Origin: Chara braunii
Taxonomy: Eukaryota > Plantae > Charophyceae
Direction: 5' to 3'
NCBI GenBank assembly: GCA_003427395.1
Contig: BFEA01000040.1
Span: 837,221-901,220, forward strand
Length of the DNA: 64,000 nt
The stretch's first letter is position 1. Each line of letters starts with the position of its first letter. The position numbers and the translations under genes are program-made. Shown here piece after piece: positions 4,901-55,119 of the stretch. Under the pieces are notes generated by a model. That model ran no database searches. It saw only the letters and a program-made list of their open reading frames with translations, and had not been told where the DNA came from.

Positions 4901-4962
4901 GAGAGGTTGAGCCTCCTGACCAGTCCGTGAAACTGGGACGAAACGGTCCGTCAGAGCCTCCC
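4901..4962 (+). ncRNA. Hammerhead-ribozyme-like motif (core variant CTGACCA, probably inactive)
   Basis: CTGAcCA-GTCC-gtgaaactg-GGAC-GAAAC-GGTCC-GTC; stem III ACGG.CCGT; possible bulged stem I GAGG..CTC / GAG-CCTC. Confidence 0.6.
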
Positions 4963-5764
4963 GTTATTTGTCCTTCTCTTCCTCATATGAATATGTAAGA
5001 ATCCTTTCTTTCTTCCTCTTTTTTTTTTTTTTTTTTTTTTTTTGAATATGTAAGAATCTTGATTAGAAGATAAAGCAAGTTCCATCCTGCCGCGTGACAA
5101 ATCTGTATTTTTGTTGGCCGTTTTGCTTTTTCTTTTTTCCTTTTTTGTTTGGGGGAACACTTGCTGGGGAAAAAGAAAGAAAACGCTGGAAGAACAAAAA
5201 AACGATGCACAAAAAAACACGTGTTGGAAATCACGTCCAGCACCCTAAAAGCAAGGGCGGCAAGACACGTGGCAGATACGTACTCACTCCTCCGCAGACA
5301 GTATTGATTTACTATTTGCGTCTGGAACAAACAAAAAAAGATCTACTTTGGGGATCGCATTGAATCCCAATCACCCCGAGCTAGCAGATTTTATTTGCTA
5401 GAGCCGGGAAACGGGCCCGGCTTATAGCTCGTTCTTGTTCTTCTTCTCTTTTTTTTTTCCTTTTCTTTTAAACACAAACATCCGTGTGTCCGCACAGATT
5501 GTTCAATTGATCAAGGTGTCAAAGCTTATCTGCCTTTCATCCTGTTAGTTGTTAATAATAAAAAAAGCATCTTTCATTTGCAAAATCAAGTGATGAATAC
5601 AGCTGCGGGGCAGATCTCCCTACATATCGCAGTCTCCTCGTATATTGTTTTCTTCTCCCTCTTTGCGCCCGGCTCACCGGACAGTTCTCTATGACGACAC
5701 ACAAATATATATAGAGGTATATATACATATATACCTATATATATATGTATACATGTATATAAAT

Positions 5765-5885
5765 AGGGTTAAATCTCCTGATGAGCCCGTGAAACTCCTA
5801 TCAAATAGTCCGTCACATTTCCTCGTTCTTTGTCCTCTTCTCCCTCTCTGCCGATGGTTTACCAGGCTGTTCTGTTTTTAACGAT
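5765..5885 (+). repeat. Degenerate copy of the hammerhead-bearing repeat
   Basis: CTGATGA at 5778 followed by gtgaaact and the family 3' tail; GAAA and stem II are mutated. Confidence 0.65.
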
Positions 5886-5930
5886 AACTAAATATATATG
5901 TAAATATATTAAATATATACATATAACGTC

Positions 5931-5967
5931 CTGATGAGTCGGTGAAACTCCGAGGAAACAATTTGTC
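5931..5967 (+). ncRNA. Minimal hammerhead ribozyme core
   Basis: CTGATGA-GTCGG-tgaaact-CCGAG-GAAAC-AATTT-GTC (one stem II mismatch). Confidence 0.6.
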
Positions 5968-6152
5968 GCTGGCCTCGTTTATTGTCCTCTTCTCCCTCTC
6001 TGCCTACGGTTTACCGGGCAGCTCTGTTTGACGATAATATATATGTATCGTCAAACAGAGCTGCAAGGTAAACCGTATATATATATATATATCGTCACAA
6101 ACAGAACTGCCCGGTAAACCGTAGGCAGAGAGAGAGAAGAAAACAACAAACG

Positions 6153-6210
6153 AGGGGCTGTGACAAACTGTTTCGTCGGAGTTTCACCGACTCATCAGGA
6201 GGCTGAACCG
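6153..6210 (-). ncRNA. Minimal type-I hammerhead ribozyme, intact core
   Basis: Reverse complement reads CTGATGA-GTCGG-tgaaact-CCGAC-GAAAC-AGTTT-GTC; stem I is weak. Confidence 0.72.
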
Positions 6211-6321
6211 TCAACAGATATATATATATATATATATATACATAGATATATAGATATATACATGGTCAAACAGATCTGCTCGGTAAACCGTAGGCAGGGA
6301 GGGAGAAGACGACAACAAACG

Positions 6322-6381
6322 AGGCGCTGTAACAAATTGTTTCATCGGCGTTTCACCGACTCATCAGGAGGCTGAACCCTA
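6322..6381 (-). ncRNA. Minimal hammerhead ribozyme core (GUU triplet)
   Basis: Reverse complement reads CTGATGA-GTCGG-tgaaacg-CCGAT-GAAAC-AATTT-GTT. Confidence 0.68.
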
Positions 6382-6422
6382 GCCTCCTGATGAGTCGGTG
6401 AAACTCCGACGAAACAGTTGTC
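6381..6422 (+). ncRNA. Minimal hammerhead ribozyme core, head-to-head with the previous copy
   Basis: CTGATGA-GTCGG-tgaaact-CCGAC-GAAAC-AGTT-GTC. Confidence 0.68.
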
Positions 6423-7350
6423 CTCTTCTCCCTCTCTGCCTACGGTTTGCCGGGCAGCTCTGTTTGACGATATATATAGATATGCATAGACGAAAAATTC
6501 GTAATACATTGTATATCATACTATATATATGCATATGCATAAAATACTATAAATAGTACCCTCTAAAAATAACCTCCTGATGAATCCGCGGGAACAAGAT
6601 TTGATATGTCGCTGACATACCTTCATAACAATTGCCAGCTGCCTGCTTTCTCCCAACTCCGTCTCTTCACAGGAAAACACTCCAACGTCGCAGGATGAAC
6701 AGCTTCCCTCGGGATCCTATGCACGAACTACCTTCGACGCTTTCACGCTCCGCGCTCTAAAAAATTGGATGCTCTGATGTTGTGGCGTCTTCTTCTGCTC
6801 GCTTACTACGCCCCACTAAACAACACTGCACACTGCACGCTGCGTCCGGTTGGTTGCCCTGCCCGGTTCTCTGCGACTTCCGGCGAGCAGTCGTGGACAA
6901 TCTCATCCCCAAGTGAACGAGGATATTCACGCCACCTAACTCAGCGTAAAGCCAAGTTGAGGATATTAAAGCCACCTATCTCAGCGCGCGGGGTGAATGA
7001 GGATGATGAAGCAAGACAATACATGCTGGAAAACGGCCCCGGCCTCCGCAAACCATTCTGAGATGTGGGTCCTTCCTCCTTTCCCTCTGGACCCGGTGCT
7101 GCCCTGGTTTCTGCAACTACCTTCGCCCGCCGAATAGAACGCACGCTCAATCTCGCGCGTTATCTTAGAGTGAAAGTTGCACCAAAGATACAGCTTGTAT
7201 AACCTAGCGTTCTATTCGGGGGAGGAGGATTGACCGCAGAGGTCCTCTTTCTCAAGCCCGCTTTGCTTTCCGGCTGTCTTCTCTCCAGGCGTGCTTCAGT
7301 GGCGGTGGCTCCTTGCTCTTGCGCTGCACCTACCTCAGTATGTACACCCG

Positions 7351-11975: not shown

Positions 11976-13195
11976 TGGTCGCGCAGTGTTGATGTGTCCA
12001 CAGAGAAGACAGCTGTCGCAGCGACTGCGATGGCCGTGATCATCCGCAGCCAGGTGGAGAGAGCGGCAGGGCGCATAAAGGTCACAGTTTCGAGGCGGCA
12101 GCAGAGGCTATTGGTGCATAGGGTGGTCGACGCCCCGGACTGCGTTAGCACTTCGGAGGCCGTTGTTCAACTATGCGCAGTGATCGGGTGCGGTGCGCTC
12201 CATCGGGCGATGCCACGGTGGTGGATGAAGCAGAGAACGGGTGGGACTCGGGAAGATTTGTAGCCTTTTGTAGGTATGCGATGATGCTACAGACGAGTAC
12301 TTTCGAGAGAAGCTCCGCATGTCCCGTAGAGTTTTCTTGGAAATCATGGAAGAGTGTGCACCTCATCTGCAACGATAGGTGACGTTCTACAGGGAGCCAC
12401 GTCAACCAGAGCAGACCGTCTCGTACGCGTTGTACTCGTCGGCGTCAGGTGAAACTTATGACAACAGCACATCGTCTTTTGGCATCGGGAGAGCGTCCGG
12501 ACTCATCGCCGTTCGCAATGTTACAACCGATCTATTAAGGGTGTACGCAAACAAGATATTGTGGCCGACGGGGGTGCGGAAACACGTGGTGCTACGAGCG
12601 TTCGCTGAGAAAGGCTACCCCAAATGCCATGGAGCGGTGGACTGCACACACATCTAAGTGGATAAACCTGCCAACGCTCCTAGGGAGAACGACTTTAATC
12701 GCAAGCATCGGTTCGATGTCATTGCGCAGGTGGTGGTCGACCTCGATTTGTGTATGCTGGATGTGTTCATCGCTGAATCATCGGATATCCTGGGAGCTGC
12801 CACTACATTAGGGCCATCCAACTGTCAAGTATGTGGAGGCACGGAGAAGAATGATTGCTGTTTGCGAGCCGCCTGTTACGCTGTAGAGCGGGGTAAGGTC
12901 GAAAGGATACATCCTGGCCGACAATGGGCATCCTTCTTCTGAATGGGTAGTGGTGTCGTATGGAGGGATCAATCAGCACCCCGACCAGGAGTTGTTCGAC
13001 AATAAACAAAAGGCTGCCAGAGGGGTTGTGGAGAGGGCGTTCGGGAGGTTGAAGGGGATGTGGACGTTGTCCCTGCAGATGCACAAGACGGACCTGGACA
13101 CTCTACTGCAATAGTTCACGGTCGTATGCATTCTACACAACATTCTTCTTGACGCTGGCATCGAGTTCGATGAGAATCAAGTGTGGGAAATTGAA
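11976..13195 (+). pseudogene. PIF/Harbinger (HARBI1/ALP1-like, DDE_Tnp_4) transposase, disrupted
   Basis: Motifs across frames: RWWMKQRTGG, FREKLRMSRRVF, GYPKCHGAVDCTHI (D1), YILADNG (D2), VVERAFGRLKGMW (E), CILHNILL; multiple stops and frameshifts. Confidence 0.92.
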
Positions 13196-13889
13196 GAGAC
13201 GTTAGCGCCCCCCGCTATCGACGATTGCTGGAAGAACGAAGGCCTGGATGCGCAAGGGGGCTGCGATATGATGCCGGCGACTTCGAGCGATGGCGGACGC
13301 GTCGCAAAGGCAGTGCACGGAAGAAATGACACCAGCGAATGGGTGTGACAGCCAGCCCCATTCGTTTGGTGCCCGACAGGAGAACGGTGAGTGCAGTGAG
13401 TTGGGCTTGAGGGGCCCTTCAGCTGCCCGCCGCAGGGTCAGTAACGGCGGACCGCCGCGTCGGGGGCTATGACATCAAGCAGTCCCTTTTTTGACAGACC
13501 GTCCTCACGAAATCGCCTGATCCGAAACCGTCGCTGGAGGGCGGGCCATGATTTCGAGAGGACTGGCCTTTTTTCACCGTGCTATCGACGGTTCCAACGC
13601 ATCATCTGGCGCAAATTTCCCCGCACACTTTTGATTATCGAGGCCCGCGCGGATTTTACCGTGATATCGACGGTTCCAATGCGTCATCCGACGTGACTTT
13701 TCCCGCCCACTTTCGTTTCTTGGGCCCCGCGCAGATGTATCCGCCATTCGAATGACAGTGGCGCCATTCCACGAATTTGCAGGTGGGCATTGCAATCGTC
13801 CGAAGCAGCAGGCAATCGCAGGTGTCGCCAACCCTCACGGCCGAAAATGCCCGTCGCGCGCCCGGACCACCCGCCCTTGCCAGCGACAG

Positions 13890-14624
13890 AAGAGAAACTA
13901 ACGACGGGGAATAAGATGGTAGTTGAACACGGCGGCACACACGTCCACGTGTCAAGTCCTGATCATGCGTGGCCATGCTGATGGGTGCGGGGCTTATTCG
14001 ACAACATTCTGTTGCCGCATAGAGCCCCGCATCCATCAGCGTGCCCACGCTTGTTCAGGACCTGACACGTGGACGTGTGAGTGTGCCATCTGATCGGGGC
14101 GAGTGGTCGCCAATGGAACTAGATTCGCGAAAGCAGGCCAACGCAAAAGACGAACGACATAGAGGCACTGATAGAAAACTAACCACGGGGACGATGATGG
14201 TAGTGGAACACGACGCTGTTGGTTATGTCTCGTTCGTTTGTCTGCGCTTGTCAGTTACGTTCGCAAACTTAGTGCGGACGACACAGACAAGCGCAGTAAA
14301 ACGAACGAGATAAAAGACAGAAAGAGAGATAAATAGATAGCGAGAGAGAGAGAGAGCGACAGAGAGGCGATCTCCGCCTTCATCACACGGCCCAATCAAA
14401 CGTCACGACCAAATGGCCCCGAACGTCACCCCGATCACACATCGGACTCACGGAGAGAGATCCCTGTTAGATCACACGACACTGCTCGTTCACGGCGACT
14501 GAACCCAATGTAATCGCCACCGCGCGAATCCCGACTACAGATCGCATACATGTGTGGGCATTCTGACGGTCTACGCAAACCCAGCATGGCAGGACTTTTC
14601 AGGTCGGTGGAGATGGCGAGAGAA

Positions 14625-14674
<50 letters not shown>

Positions 14675-14684
14675 ATATAGAGAC

Positions 14685-14718
<34 letters not shown>

Positions 14719-15900
14719 CGCTATATATATAGTGAGAGAGAGAGAAAGAGAGAGACAAAGCCAAATAGAGAGAGAGAGAGGGGGGGAGAGACAGAGAGAG
14801 ATGAGAAAGGGAGATAGAATGAGAGAGAGAACGCACCTTTTCCTTCCTTGATTTACAACTATTGTTGGAAACAATGGCCCCGGCGACTTGGTTGATGATC
14901 TCAAACCGCAATATGACGACGCGTGTCGCGACGCGCGAAAAGGGAGGTGCCGACGCGTGAGAGGGCAACACCGCGAATGGAGACGTGGGAGATTGCAACG
15001 CGAAGGAGATGGCGAGGCGAGGGATATGGCGACGAGGGAGAGAGAGAGAAGCGAGGTAGACGGCGGGGGAAACGTTCGTCTTATGCGTTGGCCTGTTTCT
15101 TTCCCGAACTTACCTCGGGGTGCGTTTGCGGATCTGGTTCCATTGGCGACCACTCGCCCCGATCAGATGGCACACTCACACGTCCACGTGTTAGGTCCTG
15201 AACAAGCGTGGGCACGCTGATGGATGCGGGGCTCTATGCGGCAACAGAATGTTGTCGAATAGAGCCCCGCACCCATCAGCGTGGCCACGCATGATCAGGA
15301 CTTGACACGTGGACGTGTGTGCCGTCATGTTTAACTACCATCTTCGTCCCCGTCGTTAGTTTCTCTTCAGTGCCTCTATTTCGTTCGTCTTATGCGTTGG
15401 CCTGTTTCTTTCCCGAACTTACCTCGGGGTGCGTTTGCGGATCTCGTTCCATTGGCGACCACTCGCCCCGATCAGATGGCACACTCAAACGTCCATGTGT
15501 CAGTTCCTGAACAAGCGTGTGCACGCTGATGGATGCGAGGCTCTATGCGGCAGCAGAATGTTGTCCAATAGAGCCCCGCACCCATCAGCGTGGCCACGCA
15601 TGTTCAGGACTTGACATGTGGATGTGTGAGTGTGTCATCTGATCGGGGCGAGACAAAGGAGTTTCAGGAGCAAGAATGCATGCGTTTCATTGGCGATCAC
15701 TCGCCCCGATCAGATGGCACACTCAGACGTCCATGTGTCACGTCCTGAACAAGCGTGGCCACGCTGATGCATGCGGGGCTCTATGCGACAACAGAATATT
15801 GTCAAATAGAGCCCCGCATCCATCAGCGTGGCCACGCATGTTCAGGAGCTGACACGTGGACGTGTGAGTGTGCCATCTGATCGGGGCGAGTGGTCACCAA
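13890..15900. repeat. Array of four ~140-210-bp near-perfect palindromes, partly in inverted orientation around a (GA)n tract
   Basis: Hairpins at ~13938-14079, 15177-15318, 15456-15650, 15690-15900 share arms ...TCCTGAACAAGCGTGGCCACGCTGATGGATGCGGGGCTCTAT. Confidence 0.85.
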
Positions 15901-17061
15901 CGAAACGGAACCCGCGAATGTAGCCCGAGAATGTTGTGACACGCCCTTCGAGATTGTGTCATCACTTCAGATGTTTTCTTGAAGTGTTACTCGCTTGTCG
16001 TCAATTTGTTGTCTCTCTCATGAACTGCGATATAAGGATTTTAGTCGTATGTTGTCGAACACGAAAACATGGATTCTCACGAATCGTCTCTCTTCTGGAT
16101 TGCACATGGACTTTCTTCTCGCCGAATTATTTTTTATTGCGCTCGGTTTGTTTATTCGTTTTTCCCCGTAAGTCGCGTCCTGCAGTTCACTCGGCGTTCG
16201 GTTTTGTATCCGTAAATTATCCTCTACATTCGTCAAATTTTTCACATTTTTCGTCACTCTTCCTCTCGCCGACACGAACAATTTTTTCTTATATTCTTCT
16301 GTGCGGTTTTTTAAATGGGTCACATTGCGAATTCCGAAAAAGACAACACCATCCGCAGGATCTGCACATGGAGAGAAAGAGAGATAAAGACAGGCTCTCT
16401 CGCTGCGCCTCCTCTCCTTGTCGACGTCTCTATCGATCTTAGTCTCCCTTCCGTGTCTATGCGGGTTTTCTGCCCTTCTCCAATCTTTGTGTATCGCAGA
16501 CAGTCGCTCAACCGATCGGAGCTTGCTCCGCATTTAGGATTGTTTTTCTTTGGCCGTTCCTTTTGGGTTCCCGCTCTTTCAGCGGATAGCGTGTTTTGAT
16601 GTATCTCTGGATCCATTTACAGGTCCGAGGATCGTGGAGCGGTATCCCTCCGGCCCGGCAGTGAGGCCGGACCAGTTTCAGGCCGTCGGCCTGACCCTGG
16701 TCCGGTACTAGGTTATTCCGCTACTGGACCCAGGCCGGTATATCACTTCGGCCTAGGTCCAGGGCGGCAGGTTCATTTCATTCTGTTGGTTCATTCGTTC
16801 ATTGCCGGACTGGACCTTCACTCAGCTGCTGCTTCCTGTGTGTGTCCATCTCTCTCTCTCTCTCTCTCTCTCACCATCTCCGCACGTGCCACTACACGTG
16901 CGTCACAAGGACACACAAGCTCACCGGCCTTGTTAAGTCTGGTGATGCTCGTCCCGGCGAGATCCGATCGAACGTGAAGAGACAAGCAGGGTGAGGACCC
17001 AGATGACGACAGGGTTAAGGAAGAAATCACGTTATTCAACCATTAATAGAGAGAAACACAG

Positions 17062-21318: not shown

Positions 21319-23678
21319 GATCTCCTGCTCAGGCTCTTCGTCTATGTTTGACCGTCTGCCATCTGTACTGTCATGTATGTGTACTTCGAACGTCATTCTT
21401 GAGACTGAGCGTCACCTATCTTTACCGTCCCAGTCGCTTTCTGTTTGCTACTCTCCACGTCGTCCGTCTCCTTCGTCCTTCAGTGAGACACAAGAGAGTC
21501 CATCGGATCCTTCTTCCTCCCATTTTATTAAAATTTTGTTCTCTCTCTTCCAATTTCAGTTCCCTTCCCCATCTCACTATTCTGTTTCCCTCTCTCCTGT
21601 TCATCTTAACTCCCTCGTTCACTCTCCCTCTACTGCTCCCAGCCTCTCACTCTCCCTCCTTCTCTCCCCCTCCCTCACTCTCCCTCCCTCTGCTGCTCTC
21701 AGCCTCTTACTCTCCCTCCTCCCCTCTCAGTTCCTTTTTATAGACGGGTCATCTTCCTCCATCTCAGATGCACTTTCCGGCTTGCACCCCCGAGTAGAAC
21801 GTACGGTCACTTTTGCTGTATCTAGACTGAAAGCTCGCCCCAATACAGGCATAAACGACCCTACGTTCTATTCGGCGGAAGACGGGTAGTGGCGACTGTG
21901 GCGGCTTTCAACATGGTTTCCCCCGGCTTGAGGAATCGTGTAATTGAGGACGTACTATAGAGCTACAGTCTTCACCCGAATACAACGCCCGGTCATTATC
22001 GCCGCATCTGGACTGAAAGTCGGGCCAAATGCAGCTATAATGACCGGGCGTTCTATTCGGGTGAAGACGGTAGCAACTTGGATTGCCGCGATGTTGCTGC
22101 TGTACCCTTCTTCCTCCTCCTCCTCAGGTCCTGCCTCTCTCCGGCCCACAGGCACCGACAAACACACAAGCACATACTCTCTCGCTCTCTCGCGCAATTG
22201 CACAGATCAGCAGGCATACCCCTGTCAGACGCACGCACGCAAAGTTGCAAACATAAACACGCCCAATGCGGCCCCATCGTCTCAGAAAATGCAGCGCCTT
22301 GCTCCACTAAACAAGATTCGATGTTCCTAAGGAAAGGACCGAAAAATGCATCAGAGACGCATAACGACTGACAAAACATGTTGAATGTATCGTTGGTAGC
22401 ACAGCTGTCCAGAAACACAACATATCTGCACATCATGCAGCAGTGAAAGTCACTCACACGGACAAGGTCTTCTTACCCAGACGCATATAATTTCCACCTT
22501 TCCACCCAGAAAAAAAAAAAGAAAAAAAAAAGAAAAAGAAGTAGGCTATTCCTCGATTTATGCTTGTCGTCCTTGAGCAGGGCCGTCACTCGTTCTTTTT
22601 TCTTTCATTTTCATTTTTTTTCCCGTTCTCTTTTTTAAATACTCACTGTACCGTTTCATTTCCAATGCTTGTCCCGAAGTGTCCCGAAGTGTCCCGAAGG
22701 GACAACCGTACAATAACACAAATACCACACCATTACTTTCCTTTCATTTTTTTTTTCACGCACGACTCTGTCTATCCTTTTTTTCTTTTTTTTTTCTTTT
22801 TTCTTTAATTATTATTAGAAGGGCCCAGTGCCCAAGGCAAACGACATTAACACAGTAACCAATAACAAGGACAGCCGGGTTGTCCCGCCCCACCGGGAGC
22901 GTGGTCCCACTAGCCAGGAGGATGGGAGTGAATGCCTGAATCTAGACGTTGTTTGTGCACATTTTTGAAGTGCTCAAAATCACTCCATAGATAAGTAATA
23001 AGATAGTGGCATTTATAAGAAAGATTTCTGGAAAGATGGTGCAGGAAATGGAGATTGAACTGCTTTTCTGCATCTCTGCGTACAACACGTCCAGATTCTG
23101 GCATTCAATCCTAGCCACTTTCCTAGTGGGACCTTGGCCCGTGTTGCATATCGTGAAACACAGTCATAAGTATGGCGCAGATTCCCAGAACCGACCAGAT
23201 AATACAGAGTTAATACAAATGCAAGCGGAAGACTTGAGATACCTTGGACTGGAGTCGAACACTCTCAATCATACATCGGGGGTGTGAAAGCCCTGGCTGT
23301 AGACATAGATGAAGGCCAGGGTCTGAGATCATCCACGGACGAATGGAGGGAGGAGAGAGATGAAGGGAGGAGAGAGATGAAGGGAGGAGGAGAGGGAAGA
23401 TGACGTCAACTCAATGTTTCCAAAGATAGTATCTTGAAATGTCAGAAGTGATGAAAATCCGAAATGTCGCGAATACCATGTCTCACAATGTCTCAGATAT
23501 CGATCTCACAATGTCAAGTACATCTCCAGAAGGAAGATGAAATCAGATCCCCAAGTAGTCCTCAGCCTGTAGTCCCAATGCCGCTGTTCCCAATGTTATC
23601 AGAATCCGTAACCTACCTTCATACTCCAGTAGTCCTGTAGGAGAACCCAGAAGTAGACTTAGACTGAGAAGGTAGGAG

Positions 23679-25007: not shown

Positions 25008-26151
25008 AATGACCGGCGTTCTATGCTGGTGAAGATGGTAGGCGTCCCGTAGGAGTCGTCGCCGCCTGTGTTTAACTTTTTTCTTTGCTCTTGGAACACG
25101 CTAGGACCTCCTGTCTCAGGCGCTGTGAATTCATCTGTCTCAAAAAACCCAAAGAATTCTTCGATTAATTCCCAAAACAAGCAAAAAAAAAAACAAAAAA
25201 AATCACCGATTACTTCCTTTTGTCTTATTGTGGCGCTCGCCGCAGCGAACGCCTTCCAGAAATTCTCAGCGGCCTTTCGGCCACTGAGGGGGTTTGGAAT
25301 ATAGTTTTCAACCAGCAATAGACGCGTCTCGGGTAGCCCTCATGGACTGCGTCATTGCCCCAAGCGCAAAAATGCTTCACTTTTAGTAAAACCGGCGATT
25401 TATAGGACCGTTGTCGCTGCAAACAAGATGCAGAAAGGGTTATGGGATAAGGGTACGAGCAAAAATCCGGGCCTTGATTCTCAGCACGGGCAGGTCGTGC
25501 TCAGAGCATCCTAACAGGGAGGACTTTCCGCTATGTATCTGAGGCTAGTTTCGGTTGATCCGTGATGTATCGGAACCGAATTAAGATGCAAAGACAGCTC
25601 AAAAAATCAATCAAAAACAAAATCCGAACGGCGAGCATCCAAGATTTAGGCCATCGCTGCACTACTCTCGACATGCGCAAAAGACAAAAAGCATGGGGGC
25701 GTATGTAGCCATGTTTCTAGCGAAGATTCACTCTCGTTTTGCACATTTCGAGAGTAGTGCTGCAGTGCAGCGAGGCCCTCGATGCAGCTTTGGCTGCAAT
25801 ACACGCTGTGGGGACACACTCGCACTGGGACCCCCTCGATGTAGTGTAGTCGTCCACACTCTCCATTCTCGTTACGAAGTCTGGGGCTAGGTCCGACTTA
25901 CACGAATTAAGCGATATTGACCGTAGATATAGCAAAGATCAACGGCCATAATCTCTTAATCTGTGCAAGTGGGACTTTGCCCCAGGGTATTTTCGCACAA
26001 CGAGTTTACCGGCTGGATCCGGCCATATCAACGGTTCATTAGACATCATCAAAATCTCAGGTGTGAGTTGCACTTCGCCTTGCCCCCTTCTTCTTGTTGT
26101 TCTTTTTCTTTTCTTTTCATTTTTAAATAATAAACAGAACCGCCAGCTTTC

Positions 26152-30908: not shown

Positions 30909-30942
<34 letters not shown>

Positions 30943-31004
30943 GGCGTCAGGGAGTTTCTGACGCCGAGTTTGGTGGAAAACTTAGCGTCAGAAACTCCCT
31001 GACG

Positions 31005-31043
<39 letters not shown>

Positions 31044-31412: not shown

Positions 31413-31998
31413 CAACGTTCAAATGCGAATGAATCTTCCGCGATAACGTGGAAGATTCATTCGCATTTGAACGTTGACACAGAGAGAGAGAGAGAGAGAG
31501 GGCGTCAGTGAGCTTTTGACGCCGAGCTTAATCCACCAAACTCGGTGTAAGAAACTGCCTGACGCCCCCTCTCTCTCTCTCTTTCTCTCATTTTTCCCCC
31601 CTTTCCCCCTTGCCTCGCCCGTTTTTTTTCGTTTGTTACTTCTCGTTTTCGTCGGGTTTTTTTTTTTTTTTTTTTTTTTTCGGCCTGGTTTTTGGGGAAT
31701 ACCGGTCGTTCGCCAGTGGGTACCCCGCCCGAAGCGGCGAGTTAACGGCCACGTCGGCTTTCTCAAGCTGGGCGAGGTACTAGTGGTTTAAACCACCAGA
31801 ACTTGGCCAGTTATCGATATCGAGCCTGAATATGCTCTGCGCACCGTTTCATGCCAACCCACCAACGAAACCAAAAAAAATTTGTTTTGGGTGGCGGCGT
31901 CAACCTTTCGGGTCCGGTACCCCGCACCTCCGAAACTTGCGGGGCGTTAACGACAAAGCCCCGAGGCAGACATATGGGTAAAGTACAGGTGGTTTAAA
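30584..31998. mobile_element. Two abutting TTTAAA-flanked MITEs (AACCACCAGTAC TIRs); the first is expanded by microsatellites and a gap
   Basis: Ends at 30584, 31787-31792 (shared GGTTTAAACC junction) and 31998; intact relatives at 62405-62611 and 62987-63200. Confidence 0.7.
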
Positions 31999-45093: not shown

Positions 45094-46545
45094 CACCCAG
45101 ATCACCCACTCTTTCACCACCACCGTACCACGCTTACCTGGCCTTCAGTCAAACAAACAAAAGGAGAACAAACAAAAAAGGAGAGAGAGAGAGAGATTTC
45201 AATCAAGAGTCACCTGGGCCGAGGTCGGGCTAGCAAAGTGGATTTAGATTTAACGACTGTATCTCGACGTCTTTGTGCAGAGGTGCCGAAAATCGCAATT
45301 TATCTGCTTTCTCTGCATCTCTGCTTAAAAACCATCCAGATTCAGGCGCTTAATCCACCAATCCTTTTTACTATTGCTAGTGGGACCTTCCCCCCGCCTC
45401 ATGCCCTCAACCACAGGCTGACGCCAAACGCGCCTCACAAGATTCTTCTTTCCTTTTCTTCTTTCTTTCTTATTTCTTTTTTCAAACAACACATTCAATC
45501 ATAAATTTTAAATGCATGGGCTTGGTCGGGAGTGCCTCGCCCAGCCCAAACGACTGGCGGGGCATAAATGTAGGGAACGCCGACCGCCGTGTTTTGCATG
45601 ATTGAGTTTTGTGTTACGTCAAGATTTGTTATTTAAACTTCATTATACAACAGCCTGGCGGCTGCGTCGATTATGTAAAATCTTTCCCAAAAAAAAAAAA
45701 AAAAAGATTAAATCTTTTTCCCAAAAAAAAAAAAAAAAAAAAGATTATGAACCTCGCTGCACTATGTGAAATCATAGTAGTTCCTTTCAGTTTCGGGAAA
45801 GGTGGAATGGTAGCAGCTTCGCTCCTTTGTGGTATTTTCAGCATATCATGGATTTTTTTTTTTTCCTTTTTTTTTTTCCTTTTTTTTTTTCAAATGGAGC
45901 ATCACACGATTCGTTTTTTTTTTTTTTTTTTTTTTTGGTCCAGATATTAAACCACTAGTACAGATACTATACTTGATCTCAGCCGAATGCAGAGGAAGGT
46001 ATCATCCCAAGATTGATCACCACCTCTCCCAGGTGAGGGCATACTCACACGAGTGGTTCCAAAATATATCTGACTGCAATTACGGTCAGGCATGGATGAA
46101 TCTGGCGGCAATCACGTCTACATCCCAAGGTTGATCCCAGCTCTCCGACGTGCGGGCATACTCACACTTGTGCTCTCCGAAATATATCTGACTGCAATTA
46201 CGGTCAGGCATGGATGAATCTGACGGCAATCACGTCAAGAGTCCAGACTCTAGTAGGAAAGAGTCCGAGTGCGTGCATTACAAAAAGTAAAAAAGCAAAA
46301 AAAAAAAAAAAAAAAAGTTAGAAAGCTCAGAGAGGGAACAGTGTTTAACTATTGCTGTTAACACTGCTAAGGTCATACTCAACCGGGCTCTATCTTTTTT
46401 TTTTCACCATTAAATGTATCTGGCCACATCTACGGCCAAACGTGGACGTAGCTAACCGCAGCTACATACAGAAATAAGTACGGAAGTCCTAACGTGAGTA
46501 TGCCCTAAGAAACAGAACAGGGAAAACCCAAAAAAAAAGGAAAAG

Positions 46546-46957: not shown

Positions 46958-46958
<1 letters not shown>

Positions 46959-47075
46959 AGCCTCCTGATGAGTCGGTGAAACTCCGACAAAACAGTTTGT
47001 CACAGCCCCTCGTTTGTTGTCCTCTTCTCTTCTCCCTCTCAGCCGACGGTTGACCGGCCAGTTCTGTTGGACGAT
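46958..47075 (+). repeat. Hammerhead-bearing repeat copy (GAAA mutated to AAAA)
   Basis: CTGATGA-GTCGG-tgaaact-CCGAC-aAAAC-AGTTT-GTC plus family tail. Confidence 0.75.
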
Positions 47076-47123
47076 ATATATAAATATGTCCTCTTCTCCC
47101 TTTCTGCCTACGGTTTACCGGGC

Positions 47124-47176
<53 letters not shown>

Positions 47177-47198
47177 CAGAGAGGGAGTATATATTAGA

Positions 47199-47320
47199 CT
47201 TCAGCCTCCGGATGAGTCGGTGAAACTCCGACGAAACAGTTTGTCCCAGCCCTTCGTTTGTTGTTGTCCTTTTCTCCCTCCCTCTCTGCCACCTACGGTT
47301 TACCGGGCAGCTCTGTTATA
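47199..47320 (+). repeat. Hammerhead-bearing repeat copy (CTGA mutated to CGGA)
   Basis: CgGATGA-GTCGG-tgaaact-CCGAC-GAAAC-AGTTT-GTC plus family tail. Confidence 0.75.
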
Positions 47321-51538: not shown

Positions 51539-54370
51539 TCACGCAGCACTCGTTGCAGCGCTCGTCCCGACTTCCGACAAGACTTCGATGGTGGCGATCT
51601 CCTGCTGCTCCGTCGACGAGGGCACTCCGGCGAGATTGGGAAGACTCTCTCGAAGTTCGTGTTGAAGTACCAGAAACTCGGTTGCATCCTCTATTCCATC
51701 TACATTGATCTCGTTCTGTCTCTGCATGTATCTCAAGCCTTCGACGACAGAGGGGCGCAGCTTCTGTCGATCGTATTCGGCCAAGCGAGTGAGTGCCGTG
51801 CAGGCGTAAATTTTGGTCCTTGACGTCTCCCCGCGATGGAGAAGCGCCGCTAACCAGAACGCAACGACTGTCATTCCTGCCACCGGACCCTCGTCTCTTG
51901 CACTGTCGTCGATCTCGACGGCGCGCGTCGTTGATTGATCGTCGAGCAACACCTCCTCTATCTCCACCGTCAGCAGATCGAAACACGTGGCGAGCAGGTA
52001 AGCCATCAATCGCGCGGGGCAGCGGAAGAGGTGCCGTACAGTCGGCGGACGACTGAGCGGGGCGGTGAATTGACGCCAGGAGGAGCTGGCGGCGATGCGC
52101 TCGATCCCCTCGCGCAGCGCGAACTGCGGTCCCATCCATTGCTCAAGCTCCAGCCGCAGCAGATGCAGGAACAACGTGCTGTCATCCTGTTCAATCAGTC
52201 GAGGCAGAAAGTCCTCGGTGCTGGAGGTATTAGGTTGATCTAAATAGGACAAGAGGAGGTCGCAGGTGAGCATGGCGGTGTAGAGGAGCTCGGGCGCAGT
52301 GGTGTAGTAACGGACCTGCAAGATGCGCGCCAACTCTTTCGCCTCGAAGGGGAAGAGATTGGCCGCGCCCAGCTCGTAATAACACTGCAGGATGACGGCG
52401 ATGAGCTCTTTGCCGTCGGTGGAGCTGGCGTGAGAGAGCGCGAGTCCGATCAGCCGCGGGAGGGCGCGGGACTCGCGGAAAGCGGCGCGCGCGGGGGGCA
52501 CCCAGAATCGCTGCGGACCCCGGTAGCCCTCGATCCCGCGGACGGGCTCCCGACGACGCCCCTCCCGCGGGATCGTCCCCACCAACAACCCTCGGTAATC
52601 TCGAATCCCGCGCAAGCGCGTGTAATGCGCGTACGGCGCCGCGCAATCCGCCATCAGCCGACTGAGAAGATACAGCGTATCTAGACACGTTCTTCCAGTC
52701 GGTCCGTTGGTCGCTAGCTCAACCAGCTCCTCTATTCGCGCTTTCCCCTCCACCCCCGAGAAGAGACACTCCGCCACCATGCGGTGATTGCGACAGAGGC
52801 GCCAAAGCGCGCCGACGGCCTTCTCCTGGATCAGCGGAGAGGACTTGCGCACCGCCGCGTCCAGCAGAATCAGCCCCGCCTTGGCCAGCCTGGGAGAGGA
52901 GGTGACGTTCCTTAGTGGGTCGTACATCCTCTGACCGTTCTCCTCTGCCACGTCAGCCAATCTACTCATATTCGCTAATTGCCAGACGATCGAGATAGCG
53001 CGCTCTCTGCATCGCAGAGACGCGTGATCTGTGATCACATTCACTATCCGATCGAATCCCCCTCGATCGGCGTCAACGATTAACTCGCAGGCGAAGGGAT
53101 CGCCAGACTGGACAACGCGACCGAGAGCATCCAAGGCCATCTCCTGATAAACGGCTGCGCTGACGCCGTCATCAATATTGCGGCACAGAGCGATGGCAAT
53201 GAGTTCCCTCAAGCTAAGGAACCAATGGCCAGGCAGACCGCAGTTGCAGTCCTCTCTGCGGAAAGCACACACAGGAAGAAGCTTAGGGTGGCGATGACAG
53301 TGGAAGTACCAGACAAGTGCTGGTAGTTCTCTGAGCGCTCGTTCGTCGTCGTCATCATCTTCCGGGCATCGAGGAGGAGGAGGAGGAGGAGGTAGGTGGA
53401 TCGCATTCTGAGCCTGCTGCGCATTCTCCCCGTCCGCTTGATTGCCTCCTCCTCCTCCTCCTCCTCCTTGTCCTTCTCCTTGTCCTCCTTCCCTGCCGGC
53501 GCCGGCTTCGCCTGACGCTTCTGCCGCCGCCTCCCCTCCTGATGCTGCGGCTTCTCCCGCTCTCTGCATTCCTTCCCCTTCCCCCGGCAGAGTCTCCCCT
53601 CCTGCTCCTCCCCCGCTGTTGGAGACGGCGGGGGGGAAGGGGGGGGACGGAGGGGAGCGGGGCGGGGGTGCGGTGGCAGGGGCGGAGGCAAGGGCGGGGG
53701 TAGGCGGAGAAGCGGGCACGGGGGCAACTCCCACTGCGCCTGCTCTCAAGGGGAGAACGCGCACGCGCTGCCGCCTTGCCGCCGCCATTCTCTTGAACGG
53801 CAGGGTAACAGAGTAGTAAAAGATCGAGAAAGGGATAATGATGAAAATGACACAGGAGAGAAGGATCTGCGCGAAAACCGCGGCGTACGCGAAATGTATC
53901 AGCTGCTCCAGTCTGCGAGTGCCCGCCTTTGCCTCCCCCCACCTCTTGCCTTGCGAATGGACCAGGTACACCAGCAGGATCGACAGCGTCAGCTGCGCGA
54001 GCGTTCCCGCCAGTCGGAGCGCGCCAGCGGCGCGCAGGTACCCGTAGTGCGCCTTGCCCTGCGCCAGCTGTAGCATCATCAACGAGCAGGGAACGTCTCT
54101 CACGAAGTAATTTTCGATGAACCTTCGCGTCACCTTCAGCGCCGTCTCCACAAGAAAAATGGCCATCGCGACCCGGAGGATCCCGATCCGGACCCACATA
54201 CCGTACTGGGATGCAAGGATAATACCGTAGGTGGCTAGAACCAACCAGCCGAGAATACTCTCCCCACCTTCGAGCAGGATTACCGTCCGGATTCGGTGCT
54301 TCTTCTTAACCGAAGGAGGGGTGATGTTCTCTTGGAGTAGATTCACAGCCGCGTGATTGAAAGCGTCCAT
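51539..54370 (-). CDS. 943-aa predicted membrane protein: ~4 N-terminal TM helices, Pro/Gly-rich linker, ARM-like repeats (possibly BLE2/Ptr-like family)
   Basis: Only long uninterrupted non-repetitive ORF, GC-rich; hydrophobic segments in aa ~30-190; ARM-like motifs LRCRERAISIVWQLA and PLIQEKAVGALWRLC. Family assignment is from remembered motif similarity only. Confidence 0.85.
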   Translation of the reverse strand: MDAFNHAAVNLLQENITPPSVKKKHRIRTVILLEGGESILGWLVLATYGIILASQYGMWVRIGILRVAMAIFLVETALKVTRRFIENYFVRDVPCSLMMLQLAQGKAHYGYLRAAGALRLAGTLAQLTLSILLVYLVHSQGKRWGEAKAGTRRLEQLIHFAYAAVFAQILLSCVIFIIIPFSIFYYSVTLPFKRMAAARRQRVRVLPLRAGAVGVAPVPASPPTPALASAPATAPPPRSPPSPPFPPAVSNSGGGAGGETLPGEGEGMQRAGEAAASGGEAAAEASGEAGAGREGGQGEGQGGGGGGGGNQADGENAQQAQNAIHLPPPPPPPRCPEDDDDDERALRELPALVWYFHCHRHPKLLPVCAFRREDCNCGLPGHWFLSLRELIAIALCRNIDDGVSAAVYQEMALDALGRVVQSGDPFACELIVDADRGGFDRIVNVITDHASLRCRERAISIVWQLANMSRLADVAEENGQRMYDPLRNVTSSPRLAKAGLILLDAAVRKSSPLIQEKAVGALWRLCRNHRMVAECLFSGVEGKARIEELVELATNGPTGRTCLDTLYLLSRLMADCAAPYAHYTRLRGIRDYRGLLVGTIPREGRRREPVRGIEGYRGPQRFWVPPARAAFRESRALPRLIGLALSHASSTDGKELIAVILQCYYELGAANLFPFEAKELARILQVRYYTTAPELLYTAMLTCDLLLSYLDQPNTSSTEDFLPRLIEQDDSTLFLHLLRLELEQWMGPQFALREGIERIAASSSWRQFTAPLSRPPTVRHLFRCPARLMAYLLATCFDLLTVEIEEVLLDDQSTTRAVEIDDSARDEGPVAGMTVVAFWLAALLHRGETSRTKIYACTALTRLAEYDRQKLRPSVVEGLRYMQRQNEINVDGIEDATEFLVLQHELRESLPNLAGVPSSTEQQEIATIEVLSEVGTSAATSAA

Positions 54371-54672: not shown

Positions 54673-55119
54673 GAGGAGAGAGGAGGGGGAAGGTAATGGG
54701 TGTGGGGATCGGCAATTTCCAGTGGCTAGAGGGGGTAGAGAATCCAGTGTAAGTTATGAGCTGCACGGCGGCTACTGCGGATAAGCATGTGTATTTTCCA
54801 TCCAAGAATCGAACGCACAACCTATGGCTTGCAAGGCCGACAGCTAATCAACAGGCCAAGTGGGCTGGGGTATCAACAAACGTGAAGTGAGGAAGCGATT
54901 CAAGGATTCGTTAACGGGGCTCGTGGAACAGGTTTACATGACATGAGAGAAGAGTCTAATAAGAAGATTATAGCATGCACCTGCGCAAGGACGGCACGCA
55001 TATAAAAAAAAAAATAGAAAAAAAAAAAAAGGTCCGAAAACAAAAAGGAAAAAAAGGAAGATGAACACGAAGAAGAGAAATCACACGTTTGCCTGCTAAT
55101 GGATTATTTACGGCGCGCC

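Follow-up and report, generated by a model that had tools for sequence, protein, structure and literature searches.

What are the short repeats with a hammerhead-like motif that crowd the (TA)n tracts of this Chara braunii locus, which kind of ribozyme do they carry, and does self-cleavage shape their copies? We searched the window, by which we mean the whole 64,000-nucleotide stretch of DNA that was analysed, with an nhmmer profile made from six copies. A ~115-nt repeat occurs in it as eight near-unit copies and as three to four fragments, at 4906-6470 and 46958-47320, and seven of the near-unit copies have E values of 1e-24 to 1e-37. This matches the preliminary description, which had counted six copies at the first site and two at the second. 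The copy alignments likewise confirm the module and the conserved tail that it had described: each copy reads CTGATGA (or similar), stem II and GAAA (or similar), followed by A(C/T)(A/G)(G/A)T(T/C)(T/C)GT(C/T) and then by a tail that finishes CTGTTTG(TG)ACGA before (TA)n. The 3' 120 nt of the stubs consist of the tail hairpin plus CUGUUUGUGACGA. (TA)n adjoins nearly all copies. Our best explanation, to which as a whole we give a probability of roughly 0.6, is that the units are the 3' parts of a ~270-nt type III hammerhead retroelement, with copies defined by the ribozyme's cut. The features of the window are the following, with starts given relative to the predicted cut.

4906 to 4984, plus strand: old 3'-truncated copy, starting GAGAGGTTGAGCCTC at or beside the predicted cut (nhmmer E 8e-13); core CUGACCA (G8C, dead), stem II GUCC/GGAC, stem III 3' strand ACGGUCCG
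5628 to 5697, plus strand: divergent tail fragment of a 5'-truncated copy, ending ...CTCTATGACGA (nhmmer E 2e-8, profile positions 48-116)
5698 to 5766, 5886 to 5921, 6037 to 6047, 6078 to 6091, 6215 to 6262 and 6471 to 6490: (TA)n-type microsatellite tracts flanking the copies, presumed to be insertion targets
5767 to 5883, plus strand: unit copy, starting AGGGTTAAATC (+2); GAAA changed to CAAAU, dead core; TA-rich repeats on either side
5922 to 6034, plus strand: unit copy, 5' ACG and then GTTCAGCC lost; closing pair of stem II broken (C11.1G); tail CTGTTTGACGA plus (TA)n
6048 to 6077, minus strand: tail-only fragment, tail-to-tail with 5922-6034 across (TA)4, an inverted repeat that is 94% complementary
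6092 to 6217, minus strand: best copy, equal to the family consensus across the ribozyme; retains 5 nt (CUGUU) upstream of the cut (profile match 6092-6208)
6264 to 6377, minus strand: unit copy, starting AGGGTTCAGCC (+2); stem II closed by G.U; head-to-head with 6380-6470(+), forming an inverted repeat
6380 to 6470, plus strand: unit copy with intact core, 5'-truncated (start ~AGCCTCC), with a 21-nt internal deletion right after GAAACAG
46958 to 47074, plus strand: unit copy behind (CT)n; G12A in GAAA, dead core
47087 to 47129, plus strand: tail fragment of a 5'-truncated copy, continuing into (CT)n (nhmmer E 1e-8)
47200 to 47320, plus strand: unit copy, starting GAC-TTCAGCC (+1); core CGGAUGA (U4G, dead); ends at CTGTT, with ATATAT immediately after

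The family is abundant. In DNA contigs from a public Chara run, the summed word depth on 6102-6200 is ~2.2 million, compared with 9.8 on single-copy flank; the family is therefore not a chance pattern. Many reads are at 95-99% identity. The loci sampled give a rough estimate of one copy per 15-20 kb, which is not a measured copy number. The family probably makes up a noticeable share of Chara (TA)n-associated repeats, which is relevant to genome annotation. Head-motif scans of bacterial and archaeal genomes and viral contigs gave no match, and in metagenomes the scan picked up 72 hammerheads unrelated to the family and a single member of it, L011.

The motif is an ordinary type III hammerhead, not a minimal type I hammerhead. 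In the family consensus the core (C3-U4-G5-A6-N7-G8-A9 ... G12-A13-A14) is unbroken, and the stem I hairpin, GAGG-GUUCAG-CCUC, forms the head of the unit. The 5' strand of stem III and the predicted cut site lie upstream of the ~115-nt unit. The window's only complete type III hammerhead is at 6165-6220(-), where stem III is CUGU/ACAG (4 bp), the site is GUU and the cut is predicted between 6213 and 6212. Its stem I pairs GAcG with CCUC around the loop GUUCAG; the core occupies 6198-6192, stem II is GUCGG/CCGAC and GAAA is at 6174-6171. The copy to which it belongs, 6092-6217(-), scores 81.5 bits on our own covariance model; its status as consensus was judged from read differences. Both Rfam models named in the preliminary description match below threshold. 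Hammerhead_3 gives 37.3 bits for 6165-6220(-) against 48.5 (E 1.9e-4 over the whole window), the best Hammerhead_1 score is 28 bits against 34, and no copy reaches a gathering score. At gathering thresholds, a U4 snRNA alone matched in the window.

Further copies came from other Chara DNA (loci L074, L075, L077, L078 and L083, fetched from GCA_003427395.1) and from L011, and full-length or sister copies among them have 5-9 bp of stem III in register. In L074:2643-2703, stem III has 7 bp (AGAUUGU/ACAAUCU), the site is GUA and stem I is GAGG/CCUC. In L078:21697-21772, stem III has 9 bp, the site is GUC and the fold z-score is -2.6. The minimum-energy fold of each is a three-way junction. Stem III is also in register in L077 (5 bp) and in L011 (7/9 pairs). 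In a register test, 79% of cells paired in register, compared with 35-56% when the partner was slid. At pair 15.4-16.4, two copies have C-G and another two have U-A. The covariation shuffle control was flat, and because there are only four to five complete examples, covariation of stem III is not statistically demonstrable. When four complete ribozymes were used to build a covariance model, it picked out no additional copies in 288 kb.

The 29 nt of core and stem II are identical in type III hammerheads of the unrelated metagenome contigs L043 and L063, and DNA contigs of other subfamilies part ways directly after GAAACA(G), with loose ends at 6167 and 6169 that are matched by L074 and L078. 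Additionally, the core is kept somewhat better than the rest of the repeat (5/99 mismatches vs 112/879 elsewhere; Fisher p = 0.02). Within the window, only 6092-6217(-) and 6380-6470(+) have an intact core. The other six of the eight near-unit copies carry the lesions G8C, GAAA>CAAAU, C11.1G, G.U at 10.1-11.1, G12A and U4G, so the caveat about core mutations in the preliminary description was right.

The same description had read every unit as a minimal type I hammerhead, complete in itself, with ACA-GUU-UGU as stem III, cleavage after GUC at 6162 and a stem I formed from the flanks; the near-palindromic stem III would let units act as dimers, in the manner of Penelope pLTRs and animal retrozymes. 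GUC is indeed present in 6/8 copies, the ACAGUUUGU, ACAAUUUGU and ACGGUCCGU segments are nearly palindromic, and the 28-bit Hammerhead_1 match lies at 4910-4959 (E 2e-5 locally, 0.01 for the whole window). However, this match occurs only in the old dead-core copy 4906-4984, with an inserted A and a C.C mismatch, and it arises because GAGCCUC is nearly self-complementary. The consensus strands available for a type I stem I, AGCCUC on the 5' side and ACAGCCCCUC on the 3' side, are direct repeats that form at most 3/6 pairs, with the closing pair broken. Pairing is found only in 4906-4984, at a one-base offset, which is what the accompanying caveat about a weak or offset stem I had said. The supposed GUC site reads GCC in the full-length copy L011. 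Sister subfamilies retain the catalytic module and swap everything past GAAACA(G), including the ACAG.TTGT segment that had been taken for stem III. In full-length or sister copies it is the upstream sequence that pairs in register with the bases past GAAA, as in type III. The covariation claimed for the stems stands for stem II, where GUCC/GGAC in 4906-4984 is a compensatory change relative to GUCGG/CCGAC; the variable positions assigned to stem III are CpG-type transitions within one strand of a 7-9-bp type III stem. The type I reading is already largely refuted, and we find it barely credible.

Most window copies resemble the part of a full-length element that lies downstream of the cut. 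This element is ~270 nt long and non-coding. L011:505-770 and L075:12394-12886 have a common 5' region ahead of the ribozyme (95.6% identity), and in 288 kb this region was found 3 times, compared with ~20 post-cut units. As longer copies with 140 nt upstream exist, the start of the unit is not the start of the element. Relative to the cut, copies start at -5, +1, +1, +2, +2, +2, ~+7, ~+8, +19, +29 and +33. Thus the starts cluster at the cut: 5/11 lie 1-2 nt past it, for which the chance probability is ~1e-8 (2-nt window, 270-nt element). This pattern suggests that RNA was copied back into (TA)n after it had cleaved itself. Against this explanation stand the length of stem I, which is just 4 bp, the ~30% of near-identical copies in which the tail has CUAU and not CUGU, and the resemblance of most copy ends to the cut-site region, for which the explanation gives no account. 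When single units were folded, their energies were no better than those of shuffled sequence (z -0.1 to +0.6); a lone unit is therefore not a notably structured RNA.

Truncation of the 5' end also falls in other places, such as loop 2 and the core, as in target-primed retroelements, and for this reason the cluster of starts could mark a stop of the reverse transcriptase or the own start of a short element. It is possible to see all units as ordinary 5'-truncated or short SINE-like copies in which the hammerhead is passive and self-cleavage lies outside the life cycle. Their common start would then be a transcription start, or a stall of the reverse transcriptase at stable stems I and II. The mutated cores in six of eight copies are consistent with this, as are the truncations at 6183/6184, 6173, 6181, 6186 and 6192 in DNA contigs and those in L074, L075 and L083, the weak stems I and III of the window copy, and the lack of cleavage ends in RNA reads. 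Hammerheads are moreover dispensable in most Chlamys and Naiad elements (Craig et al., PMC8557442). However, core and stem II are perfect in the family consensus, the core has diverged less than other positions (p = 0.02), and in-register stem III has been kept by at least three subfamilies with different flanks. Copies begin precisely at +1/+2 from the predicted scissile bond and not where a helix has its base. We consider a passive relic unlikely, although it keeps a real share of the probability. A classical SINE was rejected: L011 has no tRNA-, 7SL- or 5S-derived head (ARAGORN, Rfam), and the tail is not A-rich.

Transcripts of the family are present. In two oligo-dT RNA runs the depth is up to 2,490 and 5,444, and the reads are sense-biased: the favoured strand switches according to how a copy is oriented. 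A single truncated locus, whose flank is ATATACTTAATATG..., accounts for about 1/10 of RNA reads. In these oligo-dT-selected libraries, and with no full-length copy in the window, there is no position where many molecules start or stop. As read ends are not enriched, the RNA gives no direct sign of cleavage.

Could the units instead be strict retrozymes? In that case tandem or LTR-bounded copies would be cut at two hammerheads and ligated into a unit-length circular RNA, either replicating or serving as template. The ends of the copies give some reason to think so. Most end in ...CTGTTTG(TG)ACGA, resembling the cut-site region; the tail CUGUU-UGU-GACGA is like the sequence across the cut (CUGUU/GACG, cut at the slash), as if copies slightly exceed one unit. 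CTGT(T) is the exact end of two copies, at 47320 and L075:12923, and the tail CUGU could pair with ACAG and so join the ends. However, the joints at which RNA reads go back, from 6183 to 6076 and from 6174 to 6079, link truncated copies to (TA)n plus tail. Very similar joints at nearby positions, with 1-4 filler letters, are present in DNA contigs (from 6173, 6181, 6186 and 6192 to 6076), and the RNA joints are therefore genomic arrangements and not circles. No unit-length tail-to-head joint is among the supported joints, so the RNA joints observed do not support the unit-length or circular RNA anticipated in the preliminary description. The copies are scattered, singly or as inverted pairs, and form no tandem arrays, they have no LTRs, and the 5' region of full-length copies is unlike the sequence preceding the tail. 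A strict retrozyme is very improbable. We had also considered a ribozyme that spans the tail-head junction of tandem or circular units, and dropped it on account of the full-length copies with their unrelated 140-nt 5' region. The tail of L011 has GUGU, which would compensate for ACAC; this is probably a coincidence, as the upstream strand of L011 already pairs 7/9.

Returning to cut-defined copies of a type III element, we can consider how they are inserted. (TA)n lies on both sides, 5' truncation is common to the pattern, partial copies adjoin in inverted or tandem arrangement, and there is no poly(A). The window has head-to-head and tail-to-tail pairs, and in L075 an inverted 5'-truncated copy, 12276-12371(-), lies against the 5' end of the full-length copy at 12394(+). 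These inverted and truncated neighbours resemble the insertions of Penelope-like elements, for which Craig et al. 2021 (PMC8557442) described the same pattern. Pfam searches with 30 long ORFs identified domains of LINE and Ty3 type; neither the window nor 224 kb of other Chara DNA gave a Penelope-like reverse transcriptase or a GIY-YIG ORF. The check that the preliminary description had suggested, for copies adjacent to Penelope-like ORFs, found no example in the DNA searched. As no reverse transcriptase was found near any copy, we can only infer the partner. LINEs with RVT_1 and zf-RVT near the sampled loci were rejected as partners; they have poly(A) ends and nothing in common with the tail. 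The window ORF has matches among Chara braunii proteins; an exact look-up of the window's 943-aa ORF gave no match. Taken together with the ribozyme data, the picture of a non-autonomous family that lacks a reverse transcriptase and carries a genuine hammerhead module holds, the habits of a Penelope-like retroelement are probable, and the minimal type I architecture has been given up.

Based on these results, we propose a model for the life cycle of the element. The ribozyme would lie ~120 nt from the 3' end. In the full-length RNA, stem III would form between ...CAGAC(U/C)GU and the ACAG... that follows GAAA, stem I would be the hairpin GAGG-GUUCAG-CCUC, and stem II would be GUCGG-UGAAACU-CCGAC. 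Self-cleavage would be expected after GUU or GUA, immediately ahead of GAGG/GACG. The fragment downstream of the cut would comprise the ribozyme body, a pyrimidine-rich spacer, a conserved 3' hairpin (CUGCC-UA-CGG-UUUA-CCG-GGCAG) and CUGUUUG(UG)ACGA. This fragment may be reverse-transcribed at nicked (TA)n microsatellites by an enzyme supplied in trans, and the resulting copies would be cut-defined, further 5'-truncated, tandem or inverted. Because the upstream strand is missing from such stubs, they could not cleave and would decay. We infer that cleavage occurs, that it precedes reverse transcription and that the enzyme belongs to a Chlamys-type Penelope-like element. That type III self-cleavage is an obligatory template-making step, with the 3' product, which retains the catalytic body without the substrate strand, copied into (TA)n by a Penelope-like reverse transcriptase, is a tentative proposal to which we give somewhat less than an even chance.

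If this proposal is true, roughly 10^5 'dead-on-arrival' stubs record the activity of a ribozyme in vivo, and the long-unexplained hammerheads of Penelope-like elements would have a concrete role. The many young copies are a natural readout, as the predicted scissile bond can be checked against their 5' ends. If cut-defined starts hold genome-wide, the ribozyme acts on the template of retrotransposition. The host is a streptophyte alga, which stands between the plant case (type III, LTR retrozyme) and the animal case (type I, Penelope-like retrozyme), and the proposal, if true, would link the plant type III and the animal Penelope-associated hammerhead retroelements.

Among known hammerhead retroelements, close counterparts of the family are the hammerhead-bearing Chlamys elements (Chlamys-2_cBra, PLE-X) described by Craig et al. 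2021 (PMC8557442), who reported that Chlamys-2 of C. braunii has a canonical hammerhead at its 3' end; the species is the same, and the hammerhead likewise lies near the 3' end. Both groups insert at microsatellites, are 5'-truncated, have adjoining inverted or tandem partial copies and lack poly(A). By description, Chlamys elements are 3-8 kb long, whereas the Chara element is ~270 nt (115-nt stubs) and has no ORF. Chlamys targets are (CA)n and (C)n, and those of Naiads are (TA)n, as in the Chara family. Craig et al. 2021 (PMC8557442) noted that hammerheads can be dispensed with in most Chlamys and Naiad elements, and stated explicitly that the role of the hammerhead in Penelope-like elements is an open question.

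Among animal elements, non-LTR retrozymes and the hammerheads of Penelope pLTRs are comparable. They were reportedly treated by Cervera and de la Pena in 2014 and 2020 and by Lunse and colleagues in 2017, and are treated in a preprint by Li et al. 2026 (10.64898/2026.07.22.740005). They too are non-autonomous, hammerhead-carrying, abundant and transcribed elements without a reverse transcriptase, and both they and the Chara family are thought to be derived from and moved by Penelope-like elements. Animal retrozymes are of type I, often minimal, and form tandem 170-400-nt units and circular RNAs, whereas the Chara family is of type III, its dispersed, inverted or truncated copies are split by (TA)n, and no circle was seen.

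Plant LTR retrozymes are also non-coding, non-autonomous retroelements of the green lineage with a type III hammerhead. According to Cervera et al. 2016 (PMC4918200), they have two ~350-bp LTRs with a hammerhead in each, PBS and PPT, and 4-bp duplications, form circles of 600-1000 nt and are mobilised by Ty3/gypsy elements. In contrast, the Chara family has no LTRs, a single hammerhead and (TA)n insertion, and no long direct repeats bound the copies in the window.

Finally, HDV-like ribozymes stand at the 5' end of R2, RTE and L1Tc. These elements are autonomous, and every new copy keeps a working ribozyme. The likeness is that in these elements, as we propose for Chara, the RNA template for the new DNA copy owes its 5' end to a self-cleaving ribozyme. 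The Chara ribozyme is of another class, and its cut would remove one strand of the ribozyme; for this reason Chara daughter copies, unlike those of R2, RTE and L1Tc, would be unable to cleave.

A single repeat family occupies 4901-6480 of the window, with a second spot at 46958-47320. A profile made from six copies recovered seven near-unit copies (E 1e-24 to 1e-37), an older copy and shorter fragments.

Copies of the family matched by the profile in the window
5767-5883, plus strand, near-unit copy
5922-6034, plus strand, near-unit copy
6092-6208, minus strand, near-unit copy
6264-6377, minus strand, near-unit copy
6380-6470, plus strand, near-unit copy
46958-47074, plus strand, near-unit copy
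47200-47320, plus strand, near-unit copy
4906-4984, plus strand, older copy, 3'-truncated
5628-5697, plus strand, fragment
6048-6077, minus strand, fragment
47087-47129, plus strand, fragment

The repeats are real, and the preliminary description rendered their sequence accurately. The unit, ~115 nt long, runs GGTTCAGCCTC, CTGATGA, GTCGG-TGAAACT-CCGAC, GAAAC and AGTTTGTCACAGCCCCTCG, followed by a pyrimidine-rich spacer, the hairpin CTGCC-TA-CGG-TTTA-CCG-GGCAG, the end (T/C)TCTGTTTG(TG)ACGA, and (TA)n. The core has diverged less than the rest of the unit (5/99 versus 112/879, p = 0.02) and is intact in the family consensus; it is mutated in six of eight window copies.

Judged from its sequence, the motif of the family is a type III hammerhead. 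At L074:2643-2703, one of the related loci drawn from GCA_003427395.1 outside the window, it reads gcAGAUUGUA|GAGG-GUUCAG-CCUC-CUGAUGA-UUUGG..CCGAU-GAA-ACAAUCU, where stem III spans 7 bp in canonical register, the site is GUA, and stems I and II are closed; its minimum-energy fold is exactly the type III three-way junction. In L078, CCAGACUGUC, ending at the cut, pairs with ACAGUCUGG to give a 9-bp stem III and a GUC site (fold z-score -2.6). Stem III has 5 bp in L077 and 7 of 9 pairs in the metagenome contig L011 (CAGACCGU-U before the cut, with ACACUUUGC). Across the four complete examples, 79% of stem III cells pair in register, versus 35-56% with the partner shifted by 1-3 columns; these four are too few for covariation to be demonstrable against a shuffle control. 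At pair 15.4-16.4, two lineages have C-G and two others U-A; at pair 15.3-16.3, the old strands show G-C where the young show A-U. The 29-nt core plus stem II is identical to type III hammerheads in two unrelated metagenome contigs (L043, L063).

In the type III register, the unit head GGTTCAGCCTC forms the stem I hairpin's 3' two-thirds, and the predicted cut site lies just upstream of the unit, between 6213 and 6212 in 6092-6217(-). This copy does not differ from the family consensus within the ribozyme and gives the best Rfam match in the window (Hammerhead_3, 37.3 bits versus a threshold of 48.5, whole-window E 1.9e-4); only CUGUU remains upstream, giving stem III as CUGU/ACAG. Copies in the window are mainly dead stubs, with a single complete but weak ribozyme among them.

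A minimal type I hammerhead had been proposed instead. In that type, the bases just 5' of CUGAUGA must pair with those just 3' of the cleaved GUC. Here, the two consensus strands, AGCCUC and ACAGCCCCUC, are direct repeats rather than complements. Rfam Hammerhead_1 matches the window only at 4910-4959 (28 bits versus a threshold of 34), with an inserted A and a C.C mismatch; this alignment depends entirely on GAGCCUC being nearly self-complementary, and the copy has the core CUGACCA and is dead. At the proposed GUC position L011 has GCC. Other subfamilies seen in the DNA contigs match the module as far as GAAACA(G) and differ beyond it; copies of this kind also occur in L074, L077 and L078. The reported stem III covariation, ACGG..CCGU against ACAG..UUGU, dissolves into CpG-type transitions within one strand.

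A type I hammerhead, GGGCC-CUGAUGAGUCCGUGAAACUCGGACGAAAC-ACUC..GAGU-GUC-GGCCC, is common to dozens of metagenome contigs (L001-L073 except L011), many apparently from hot-spring sets. It is preceded by a conserved GGATCCCNGATTCA... segment and seems to represent a distinct repeat family, mobile or viral in nature.

Two longer copies were found: L011:505-770 and, broken by an assembly gap, L075:12394-12886. Both start after (TA)n with a common 5' region, TGTTTTGCTGGCTTG... (95.6% identical), which extends ~140 nt to the ribozyme in L011 and is visible for its first ~90 nt in L075. In 288 kb, this region occurs 3 times versus ~20 times for the unit after the cut. L011 itself (BFBZ01014625.1, 1-1110) is transcript-like, with a run of A at each end, and harbours repeats of Chara type, among them this full-length copy; probably a transcript from Chara or a close relative was submitted with environmental data.

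Starts of copies relative to the predicted bond
-5: copy 6217
+1: copies 4906 and 47200
+2: copies 5767, 5922 and 6377
about +7 and +8: copies 46958 and 6380
+19, +29 and +33: L083, L075 and L074, respectively

Five of 11 starts fall within a 2-nt window of the 270-nt element (chance ~1e-8), each position being ambiguous by about one base in AT-rich flanks. The simplest reading is that the element RNA would cleave itself and the downstream fragment would then be copied. Daughter copies, lacking the substrate strand, would be unable to cleave and would decay.

The family's conserved 3' terminus, CUGUUUG(UG)ACGA, is similar to the bases that span the cut, CUGUU|GACG. In two cases (47320 and L075:12923) the copy stops precisely at CTGT(T), and ~30% of near-identical copies have CUAU for CUGU at the tail. 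As a guess, the conserved tail hairpin may serve RT recognition. A sister element (L074:2056-2860 and L077:16158-16805) is at least 700 nt long, GT-rich and non-coding; its type III hammerhead lies 100-200 nt short of the 3' end and precedes a T-rich stretch. Its L074 copy has an internal ~104-nt duplication and apparently ends ...GCTGCTGTTTGACGT, a terminal motif common to the (TA)n family.

We compared 5640-6600 with four C. braunii data sets: raw reads of two oligo-dT RNA runs, a set of RNA-like contigs and a set of DNA contigs. Summed word depth in the DNA contigs, which is not a copy number, was ~2.2 million over 6102-6200 versus 9.8 for single-copy flanking sequence; 11 further copies or fragments were present in 224 kb of Chara DNA from elsewhere (~1 per 20 kb). 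RNA depth peaked at 2,490 and 5,444, and in 6092-6217(-) only 6102, 6133 and 6141-6142 differed in at least 10% of reads in at least one run. First mates lay mostly on the plus strand for minus-strand copies (~4.5:1) and on the minus strand for plus-strand copies (~2:1). As this bias flips with orientation, the libraries are stranded, and, assuming the common dUTP protocol, family RNA is largely element-sense. Of the RNA reads, half continue into unrelated sequence; thus, copies are transcribed within many different transcripts. A 5'-truncated copy elsewhere in the genome (loose end at 6184, flank ATATACTTAATATGTTAATCAAACCCAATT) gives ~1/10 of family RNA reads, so a few loci dominate expression. 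RNA reads from these oligo-dT libraries showed no excess of molecule starts or ends at any position of 5640-6600.

Circular RNA had also been suggested. The RNA does contain supported joints that go back (6183>6076 and 6174>6079), both being 5'-truncated copies fused to (TA)n and the next tail. The DNA contigs also contain very similar joints at nearby positions, where 1-4 filler letters intervene. These joints are therefore genomic arrangements, and circles from this family are unsupported.

Other features of the window include a full-length U4 spliceosomal snRNA gene at 25233-25373(-) (Rfam 104.8 bits, E 1e-22) and weak sub-threshold matches that are U2-like (45909-46002(-)) or U6-like (22535-22642(-), 54954-55025(+)). 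A separate family at 13886-15929 comprises units of ~150-250 nt in direct and inverted orientation, with arms 84-94% complementary, in some cases separated by only 3-7 nt, adjoining an extended (GA)n tract. Its CTGATCGGGGCGAGTGGTCGCCAATGGAAC is similar to a hammerhead core without being one, and the family looks like nested hairpin-forming (MITE-like) repeats. Long perfect-looking hairpins at 30937-31015, 31471-31594 and 53365-53472 give hits well under threshold to numerous plant miRNA precursor models, on either strand; rather than miRNA genes, they are most likely remnants of inverted-repeat transposons. A 943-aa ORF at 51539-54370(-), inside a 62% G+C island, has no Pfam domain and belongs to a Chara-specific family of at least four paralogues with 33-88% identity (CBR_g12180, 88% identical to it, g38580, g51795 and g32562).

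Copies of the hammerhead family have (TA)n on both sides, apart from two that adjoin (CT)n or (GAG)n, and none carries poly(A). They often form inverted pairs: head-to-head (6264-6377(-) with 6380-6470(+)), tail-to-tail (5922-6034(+) with 6048-6077(-)) and, in L075, a 5'-truncated inverted copy directly abutting the 5' end of the full-length copy. Neither GIY-YIG nor the RT of a Penelope-like element (PLE) was found in the window or the other Chara loci examined; the RTs near these loci are poly(A)-tailed LINEs and one Ty3-type fragment, so a PLE partner is only inferred. Of the earlier interpretation, a non-autonomous, hammerhead-bearing retroelement, probably Penelope-related, stands, with type III replacing the minimal type I architecture. 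C. braunii Chlamys-2 and PLE-X elements have canonical hammerheads, one at the 3' end (Craig et al. 2021, PMC8557442). Penelope-like elements show the same pattern of inverted or truncated neighbours and a microsatellite bias (Craig et al. 2021, PMC8557442).
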